A DNA stretch of 63,982 nucleotides, filler included, from Choristocarpus tenellus KU-1152 (Eukaryota; Protista; Phaeophyceae): assembly GCA_964200185.2 (NCBI GenBank). It is 12 parts of 12 records of this genome, joined end to end, with 100 filler letters (N's around TTAATTAATTAA, not from the genome) between each part and the next. Parts side by side here need not be neighbours in the genome. Positions count along the whole stretch, not along the records: positions 12,237 to 16,948 come from CAXNAD020013371.1; 11 more parts are not named here. One strand, written 5' to 3'. The translations under genes were made by a program, and so were the position numbers. Below, one piece after another: positions 12,997-15,139 of this stretch (positions within the stretch are counted from its first letter, which is position 1; every line of letters begins with the position of its first letter). The notes beneath the pieces were generated by a model. That model did no database searches. It was not told the DNA's origin and was given only the letters and a program-made list of their open reading frames with translations.

Positions 12997-15139
12997 CATC
13001 TTGAGCCAATTGTTCGCGAGCGAGGTGTGTTGTGCATAGCCAATGTAGTTGGTAATGAAGAGTTTGGTCCCCTCATTGTACAATGCCTGATAAAAAACAA
13101 TTGCAAGCAATGCATTATATATGTGTGTGTATATATGTATGTATGTATATATATATATAAATCCACATAAATCAAGAGAGAAGTCATTCAAAGCAATAAT
13201 TGACCCGGACGTAAAAAATAGGAAGGCGGGGGGAGGAGAGGAGGGGTGGAAGACGGAAAACCATTGTATGGGCTGCTCTTCTGAAAACTTGCTATTTTGT
13301 TCGAAATGTTGCTTTACAATGTGGCTAGAGACTTGTAACAACAGGCTCTCTCTAATATGGACACGTTGAACATATTGCACACTAGCCTTGCCGACCTAGT
13401 CCTGCTGCCTCCCCCTCCCACACAACCTATTCCAGACCCCCTAAGGTCTCACCGCCCGGGCTCTCCTTGTGTTATCACTGGGGATGGACTCCCCCTTAGC
13501 TTTCTTCAGCGCAAGTCCAGCCTTGAGGAAATCCTCCAGGCGGGAGTTAGCATCTGGTTCCATTACAGCATCTTTCTCCCCCAACTGTGGCAACAGAGAT
13601 GTTCCAGGGCAGGGCATGTATTGTGCGGGGGCGCATGGGGGGGGGGGGGGGAGGAAACAACAGGTGTTGAAAATCAGCCTCAGTAGTGCAAAGTATCTTC
13701 ATTCCAACATGGGTGGATTTAAAGCATTGAGTGCATGTGTTGGAGACGAGGTCTTTTTGGAACAGTCCACTGACATTCGTACAGCTCTATGTAGCACACA
13801 AAAAATACAGGGTTGTTCTAATGTACAAACATTGCTTCAACCATATTGTAAAAACTAGTCACATACAAATTCAAAGGATATAAGGGTGGAGTGGGGAGAG
13901 AGTGCTATATTGGCCATATCGTTGGCGACATTTCGAAATCGTAACGAGGTATATTCAGCAGTAGTACGTAACATTTCACCTCACCCTTCGCTTCAGCTCC
14001 TCCAACTCCTTTTCCAAGTTCTTCACCAACGGCTCCTTCTTAGGCTTCTGAGCTTCAGACTCTTGTGACACAGCAGCAGCCCTCCGTTGCTGTTCTACTC
14101 CCCTGGCGCCCCTCCTTAACGTGCTAGCCCCGTCATCTCTCCCTACTCCTGAGGACAAAGCCGTAGACAAGACTACAGGTGAAAGATCACCAGCCCCAAA
14201 ACTAACACCATCAGTTCCGGGGGATGCAAATGTTGGACTGACGGCGGAAGGAGAGGATACCGAGATGGAACCGACGACAGACCCGGACCCTGGCGACGTC
14301 ACGGATGGAGAATTCTCACCATACTCCACTGCCCCACCATCTCCTGGGGAAATATGCTCTCCGAATGAAGGAAAGGAGGGCGCGTTCTTCGTAGCAGCAG
14401 TACTAGCAGGGTGAGTTGATTGCTCATGGGGAAAAGACGAGGACGAAGTGGCACCTCTTCCACCAGCAGACACCATCTTGGTCTCCTCACGATGTGGGCT
14501 CGCCTCTGGGGATGGAGAGGAAGAAGAGGTGGAACCAACAGCGGGGGCACCCGTATCTGCATTCGAGGATGTGTATGTTGTATCGGTGGGAATTCGACGG
14601 GAACCATCCGCTTGTCCAACAGGAACAGGGCCTACTGCCTCTTGTCCAATGTCAGCTTCCAGTGTCTCCCCTTGAGTATCATGAACGGCAGCCCTATCAT
14701 TCTTGCTCTCCAGAAAGCGAAGGTAGACCTCCGGCATGTCCCAGGAGGAGTCTTGTGTCTCCACGTTGTAGTAGAAAACCTTCCCGTCGGCATCCTGGCT
14801 TTCTATCCAACCGCCAGAGAATCTACCATCCTCACTAACTCCATCATCTTTCGACCCTCTGTCGGTATCCAAAGCAACCGTACCCTTCTCAGCAGAGGCC
14901 CGACTTCCCCCTTGCACATCGATGCCCGCATAACTATTTTTTGTACTATGCTCCTCTTCCAGTGTCTGCTCTGATGCCGAAGTAGCCGTGGCAAGCCTCT
15001 CGAAATGTTCCTCGTACCCCTGTGGCACTTCCCACTGGCTCACGTCCCTTACCGGATCGTAAAAATATACATCCCCTGTCTCTTCATCTGTATGTCTTTC
15101 CCAGGGGCAATCCTGAGGGGTATACGACGCCTCAGCCAT
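12997..15139 (-). CDS. WW-WW domain protein fused to a NELF-C/D (TH1-like) N-terminal domain; exons 15139-13985, 13584-13453, 13086-12997; 3' exons not resolved
   Basis: Two WW domains (WERHTDEETGDVYFYDPVRDVSQWEVP; WIESQDADGKVFYYNVETQDSSWDMP); GT-AG introns all phase 0; spliced LGEKDAVMEPDANSRLEDFLKAG...KLFITNYIGYAQHTSLANNWL aligns by eye with NELF-C/[24 protein letters not shown]...QLLSENYTAVAQTVNLLAEWL. Confidence 0.8.

Follow-up and report, generated by a model that had tools for sequence, protein, structure and literature searches.

On the minus strand of the genome of Choristocarpus tenellus KU-1152 (Phaeophyceae; assembly GCA_964200185.2), a gene joins two WW domains to the beginning of NELF-C/D, a member of the TH1 family. 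It was found in a window of 63,982 nucleotides (nt), made up of parts of 12 records with filler between them, and the part studied was the piece of eukaryotic DNA at positions 12237-16948 (CAXNAD020013371.1), which has 47.5% G+C and GT-AG introns of ~370-450 nt. In it lie the first three exons, the promoter-proximal half, of a gene that is real and expressed. With a probability of about 0.88, we assign the gene to a stramenopile-type NELF-C/D whose N-terminus carries, as an extension, a pair of WW domains and a disordered Ser-Pro-rich linker. The initial annotation of this DNA had proposed a non-metazoan NELF-C/D with tandem N-terminal WW domains, and that proposal is supported by a spliced contig, by orthologous loci and proteins and by profile comparisons.

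The structure of the gene was supported by a spliced contig. The minus-strand open reading frame (ORF) opens at 15139, the first ATG past an in-frame stop, and runs for 385 codons up to a donor site at 13985/13984; its N-terminus, MAEASYTPQDCPWERH, agrees with those of two orthologous predictions (MAEADAACPWQRH in P0049 and MAAPEECPWQRH in P0063), and an exact look-up of the 387-amino-acid (aa) ORF matched no record. The three phase-0 exons lie precisely where they had been predicted, separated by GT-AG introns (Table 1), and exon 2 reads in full LGEKDAVMEPDANSRLEDFLKAGLALKKAKGESIPSDNTRRARA. Three sequencing runs, all from one study that may itself be the source of the window, hold the stretch, and one of them, X3, behaves like cDNA. 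Record 20 of X3 (2677 nt, depth 248.6) carries the two anticipated junctions, 13985/13584 and 13453/13086, exactly, with minus-strand GT-AG borders; this cDNA-like contig joins exons 1-3 by splicing, in a single frame. Word depth in the run is ~250-fold over the exons and zero over the three introns, an agreement with the prediction well beyond chance. Beyond exon 3 the contig extends by 632 nt that are absent from the piece, the first 30 of which read in frame as ALPGGGEGAA, and the gene therefore reaches past the edge of the piece. A TH1-like frame was sought in 12237-12996 and none was found.

Exon 1 encodes two WW domains, as had been claimed. Pfam PF00397 matched two stretches of the exon (64.8 bits vs a cut-off of 26.9, E 7.1e-18), the best being WW2 at residues 109-136, and WW1 and WW2 each retain the signature pair of Trp residues and the Pro at the C-terminal end. 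When compared with the PDB, WW1 showed a weak likeness to Pin1 WW domains (E about 0.005), while the solved domains closest to WW2 were those of yeast Prp40 (E 1e-11), TCERG1 (2e-10) and PRPF40A (1e-8), with WBP4 also among the nearest. Each of the two domains contains three consecutive aromatics, and their first loops are acidic (DEETGD, DADGK), a combination that presumably suits ligands of the PPLP or PPxY type more than Pin1-like binding of phosphoserine-proline. The top WW scorers in the library of 1.8 billion proteins (P0001-P0004) were giants, 2200-3600 residues long, in which as many as 47 WW stretches matched.

The WW domains are followed by a low-complexity linker, residues 138-360, which had been described as Ser/Pro-rich and ~230 aa long. 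The length is close to that (~224 residues), and the composition of 18% Ser and 8% Pro includes more Gly (12%) and Ala (11%) than Pro; ten Ser-Pro sites are present. P0049 and P0063 have two short motifs of the linker in common with the window, and these are kept in part in a protein of Chrysoparadoxa australica (P0091, described below), while the low-complexity sequence flanking both is otherwise unalignable with the brown-alga-like relatives. The motifs are candidates for binding or phosphorylation, and together with the ten Ser-Pro sites they look like regulatory or binding elements.

To place the gene among its relatives, exon 1 was used as a query. An exhaustive HMMER search of the 1.8-billion-protein library found no copy of the window's protein, and a word-index protein search found nothing, low-complexity words having swamped the candidates. 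HMMER returned P0049 and P0063, two ORF-type predictions that match exon 1 end to end; both read through the donor site with the same ..ERRVR and stop 31 and 65 codons further on. Identity between the window's WW exon and the nearest relatives found was 31-45%. The N-terminus of an Ectocarpus NELF-C/D candidate is nearly the same as those of P0049 and P0063, which is why we call the contigs that hold these two predictions, L001 and L002, brown-alga-like. Exon 2 has orthologues in L002 (3208-3330) and in L001 (10103-10225, LEEKDAIMEVDFSARVTAYQSA) whose first codon is the same. Exon 3 of L002 (4088-4177, NAGVKKLVAGYKGYAQQASLVNNWLQL) is identical in length and phase to exon 3 of the window, which aligns with L002 4097-4177 at 52% identity (tblastn, E 8e-7). 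The downstream exons 4-6 of L002 are TH1: exon 4 reads ..EEDTENLMLKQLKMLIKTNFDAKK, exon 5 alone passes the Pfam TH1 profile (PF04858; 33.3 bits vs a cut-off of 24, profile positions 132-195) and exon 6 reads ..ALADLKRMCCSTSYMFMYSQ.

Brown-alga-like, Chrysoparadoxa, diatom and metagenomic relatives all show the same order, WW and then TH1, within a single polypeptide. P0091 is a single annotated protein of Chrysoparadoxa australica (CAM9308775.1, 823 aa) with two WW domains and a TH1 domain (258-684, 140.9 bits, E 8e-41), and P0121, from the diatom Epithemia clementina (KAL7575736.1, 1076 aa), has five WW domains and TH1 (374-630, 128.7 bits, E 4e-37). Both domains also occur in one polypeptide in P0152 and P0151 from a JGI metagenome. 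In the loci of P0121 (L005) and P0152 (L004) the fusion is a single uninterrupted ORF and therefore stands there without any splicing assumption. A search with the diatom protein yielded 104 relatives, about 88 of them with both Pfam domains and some already named 'TH1 protein/WW domain', and an ESM Atlas look-alike search with P0091 gave only sub-threshold leads, all with scores <=0.79. The WW-TH1 orthologues that the initial annotation had proposed to look for in relatives exist (L002, P0091, P0121, P0152 and P0151).

Exons 2 and 3 could be aligned with NELF-C/D through these fusion proteins. The motifs D-A-V-M-E-P, F-L-K-A-G, N-Y-I-G-Y-A-Q and N-W-L, which had been read from the DNA earlier, are all present in the right order, and D-x-[IV]-M-E and N-Y-x-x-x-A-Q...W-L follow one another as homologues of the same motifs in bona fide NELF-C/D. 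Exon 3 matched P0091 325-348 (BLASTP E 2e-5) and fusion profiles (hhalign E 5.9e-7 and 5.9e-8, probability 92-95%, with 94.7% for E 5.9e-8). Exon 2, taken as a trio with its two orthologues, matched a fusion profile at the expected place (hhalign E 3.9e-4). A profile of three fusions aligned with human NELF-C/D in collinear pieces at 42-75, 80-103 and 106-210 (overall E 2e-14); in it the piece '..DAVME..YM.AAG' pairs with human 42-75 and the piece 'LQLLINNYKGYAQ..L..WL' with human 80-103 (IQLLSENYTAVAQTVNLLAEWLIQ). Through the fusion-profile alignment, exon 2 corresponds to human NELF-C/D residues about 50-75, and exon 3 to residues 80-103 (IQLLSENYTAVAQTVNLLAEWL). Residues 325-507 of P0091 match human 72-257 with E 7e-23, and the residues equivalent to exons 2-3 fall within the Pfam TH1 matches of P0091 (287-348) and P0121. 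The match in P0091 opens at residue 258, upstream of its DAIME motif. By alignment, then, the charged helix formed by the last ~20 residues of exon 1 is, together with exons 2-3, the predicted beginning of the TH1 region.

Several observations weigh against the assignment to NELF-C/D. First, when the peptides of exon 2 (44 aa) and of exon 3 (30 aa) were searched one by one, each in isolation, neither matched Pfam TH1 at E<=10 and neither matched the PDB. Taken literally, this is the outcome that the initial annotation had named as refuting, though only trivially so, since pieces of 44 and 30 residues are too short for Pfam. Exon 2 was weak by itself (hhalign probability 7-35%, hhalign E 0.005, BLASTP E 0.019), and its one other candidate identity, TACO1_YebC_N, was rejected as a chance-level match (Pfam E 0.02). 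Furthermore, the piece ends in intron 3, so that only the first ~95 TH1 residues of the gene are visible; the remaining ~450 residues of the domain, which carry the contact surfaces for NELF-B and NELF-A, would lie on exons beyond the piece. The missing Pfam and PDB matches and the chance-level match of exon 2 would suit a protein whose exons 2-3 resemble the NELF-C/D N-terminus by chance and form an unrelated C-terminal tail. We regard such a coincidence as negligibly probable: exon 3 matches independent fusions with E 2e-5 to 6e-8 at the place where human 80-103 aligns, the orthologous exons of L002 precede exons above the Pfam TH1 threshold, and the transcript continues past exon 3.

Second, the splice evidence comes from a single run whose kind is unrecorded. 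X3 is not listed as RNA, and none of the sequencing runs that are so listed holds the stretch. Two further exons, the first ones of a divergent RRM gene, are included in the X3 contig with the intron between them removed, and the contig is for this reason an assembly of two overlapping transcripts, not one RNA. If the contig is not a single transcript, it could be chimeric within the gene as well, the WW exon and the TH1 exons then belonging to two adjacent genes. That arrangement is very improbable. The joints within the WW gene are exact minus-strand GT-AG splice events that preserve one open frame, whereas the RRM part is attached via unspliced intergenic DNA; moreover, WW and TH1 share single uninterrupted ORFs in L004 and L005 and one annotated protein in Chrysoparadoxa. 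The assignment of all three exons to one WW-NELF-C/D gene is retained.

Third, the canonical partner NELF-B may be missing in the group to which this organism belongs. Chivu et al. (PMC11482795) provide supplementary candidate files in which the word Ochrophyta appears 91 times for NELF-C/D and once for NELF-B. The same supplement describes many stramenopile NELF-C/D candidates with "N-terminal WW domains", and its Table S1 agrees; candidates listed there that begin with WW include those of Ectocarpus siliculosus (CBN78708.1) and Phytophthora sojae (XP_009523672.1), and also those of a MAST-3 cell, Microchloropsis and Thalassiosira weissflogii. All stramenopile NELF-B candidates in this source, among them those from oomycetes and Sagenista, carry a C-terminal bromodomain. 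Its text further presents NELF-A and NELF-E as recently derived near animals, and reports higher pausing indexes in species with only NELF-B and NELF-C/D. Elsewhere NELF is still often called metazoan-specific, for example in a statement in PMC11135906. In the literature searched we found no paper pairing 'negative elongation factor' with diatom and no functional study of a stramenopile member. The WW-NELF-C/D architecture has thus been recorded before, if only in supplementary material and database annotation, and the gene described here is one more member.

What the protein might do can be approached by analogy. Animal NELF-C/D acts together with NELF-A, NELF-B and NELF-E. The TH1 part of the present protein would act as animal NELF-C/D does, as the core of a negative elongation factor on RNA polymerase II, and in those stramenopiles that have NELF-B its partner would be the version with a bromodomain. 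The WW pair, with a WW2 of the Prp40/TCERG1/PRPF40A type, may serve as a docking module for a proline-rich ligand, and kinases could plausibly act on the ten Ser-Pro sites of the linker and so control release. The initial annotation had gone further and proposed that the WW pair tethers the protein to the phospho-CTD or the Spt5-CTR and in this way recruits a pausing complex, which, given the ligand types that the two domains seem to suit, is possible but unproven.

A different function can be envisaged for the same architecture, namely a TH1-family WW protein that has no pausing role and that in ochrophytes acts without NELF-B, for example as a WW-mediated adaptor in splicing-coupled transcription or in some other process. 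The imbalance of Ochrophyta in the NELF-C/D and NELF-B files (PMC11482795) favours such a protein, as does the fact that the nearest solved WW domains are from the splicing and elongation adaptors Prp40, PRPF40A, TCERG1 and WBP4, and the literature searched yielded no functional study of a stramenopile member that would speak against it. On the other hand, the N-terminal TH1 region is collinearly conserved from human to stramenopiles, oomycetes and Sagenista do supply stramenopile NELF-B candidates, all of them bearing a bromodomain, and pausing indexes are reported as higher where only NELF-B and NELF-C/D are present (PMC11482795). We therefore consider a non-pausing adaptor unlikely, although a serious competitor, and keep the negative elongation factor as the preferred function. 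A bolder version of the latter, which we put forward tentatively and think quite unlikely, is that ochrophytes, probably including this organism, have lost NELF-B and kept WW-NELF-C/D, and that the WW pair and the Ser-Pro linker now do the recruiting, either to RNA polymerase II or to a partner rich in proline. If true, this would be a single-subunit, kinase-regulated elongation brake, different in kind from the four-subunit NELF of animals.

Whichever of these functions applies, the gene is another clear NELF-C/D orthologue outside animals, and it adds a lineage to those in which the stramenopile version, with its putative docking WW domains, undergoes splicing and expression. It raises the question of which role core NELF plays in protists, and whether WW domains on NELF-C/D and a bromodomain on NELF-B replace NELF-A and NELF-E.

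Table 1. Features of the WW-NELF-C/D gene and its divergent neighbour, in positions of the window
Feature	Position	Strand	Details
Coding exon 1	13985-15139	-	385 codons; donor AGG/GTGAGG; X3 spliced contig spans the whole exon unbroken
WW domain 1	15017-15109	-	residues 11-41; W13, YFY, W36, P39
WW domain 2	14729-14818	-	residues 108-137; W111, FYYN, W132, P135
Low-complexity linker	14057-14728	-	~224 residues, Ser/Gly/Ala/Pro-rich
Linker motif FPSFG..SP	14360-14374	-	FPSFG(E/D)..SP common to P0049 and P0063; IPSFG in Chrysoparadoxa
Linker motif G-D-L-S-P	14177-14191	-	FG.G(D/E)LSP(V/T)V, shared with P0049 and P0063
Charged helix KPKKEPLVKNLEKELEELKRR	13985-14056	-	end of exon 1; aligns with P0091 KKPLKEQVQELEAELQEADAIMEV
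Intron 1	13585-13984	-	400 nt, GT..AG; X3 depth zero; X3 contig skips exactly 400 (CT..AC on + strand)
Coding exon 2	13453-13584	-	44 codons, begins LGEKDAVMEPDANSRLEDFLKAG; acceptor CACAG/, donor GCG/GTGAGA; phase 0
Intron 2	13087-13452	-	366 nt, GT..AG; skipped by X3 contig (skips 366)
Coding exon 3	12997-13086	-	30 codons, ALYNEGTKLFITNYIGYAQHTSLANNWLKM; acceptor TTTTTTATCAG/, donor ATG/GTGAGT; phase 0
Intron 3, 5' part	12237-12996	-	next exon past piece edge; X3 contig continues off-piece after 12996/12997
Divergent RRM gene	15509-15625 and 16078-16182	+	exons MEAPKQTKPKTNVYVGGLEEKVNEEVLHAAFVRFGDIVE and VNIPKDHVANTHRGFGFVEFEMECDALAAVDNMDG; Pfam RRM_1 E 8e-4 and 3e-7

The WW gene and the RRM gene are arranged head to head, and L001 has the same arrangement with RRM ORFs, which makes the pair syntenic. 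The RRM intron removed in X3 measures ~452 nt. Between the two divergent start codons lie ~370 bp (15140-15508), which one X3 contig crosses unbroken, with spliced exons of both genes; the 5' ends of the two transcripts evidently overlap, and this suggests a bidirectional promoter. Other features of the piece were found in its introns. A candidate for a fourth exon at ~12569 (SLEGDQGVAHGRAERNL, then a stop) suits the intron-size pattern and was rejected, since the spliced contig skips over it. The exon-like stretch there (12517-12569, minus strand) stands behind a good acceptor, ttgtag/AGCCTGGAAGGC, and would add 17 codons and a stop; left unused by the spliced contig, it could serve as an alternative terminal exon, or it could have no meaning. 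Intron 3 contains a short telomere-like repeat, TAACCCTAACCCTAAG (12763-12778, minus strand). Several unrelated contigs of X3 and of another run, X1, share only ~20 bases with the window at this repeat and then diverge, and because they touch the window there only, the motif is dispersed in the genome. A C-run in intron 1 (~13637-13657) is likewise matched by several unrelated contigs, and L001 ends in a long G-run (10433-10472); both homopolymer runs look like assembly break points.

Among known systems, the gene is most like the other stramenopile NELF-C/D candidates, with which it shares the order of WW, low-complexity linker and a TH1 opening of D-A-[VI]-M-E followed by N-Y-x-G-Y-A-Q...W-L. 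The likeness extends to exon boundaries, phases and exon-3 length in L002 and to the divergent RRM neighbour in L001. It differs from its stramenopile relatives in the linker, which in the window is Ser/Gly/Pro-rich and not acidic, and from diatoms in particular, in which WW domains number up to five and Q-A-Q-T-A stands instead of G-Y-A-Q. Prp40, PRPF40A (FBP11) and TCERG1 (CA150) are alike in being nuclear proteins tied to transcription with tandem N-terminal WW domains, and theirs are the domains to which WW2 is closest; they continue, however, into FF domains, which Pfam did not find here, whereas this gene continues into TH1. To our knowledge, human NELF-C/D is without a WW domain. The comparison with metazoan NELF-C/D (TH1L; human PDB 6GML, 7YCX and 8RBX) thus has two sides, an N-terminal TH1 region that is homologous and collinear with that of the present protein, and solved human chains in which no WW match was obtained.

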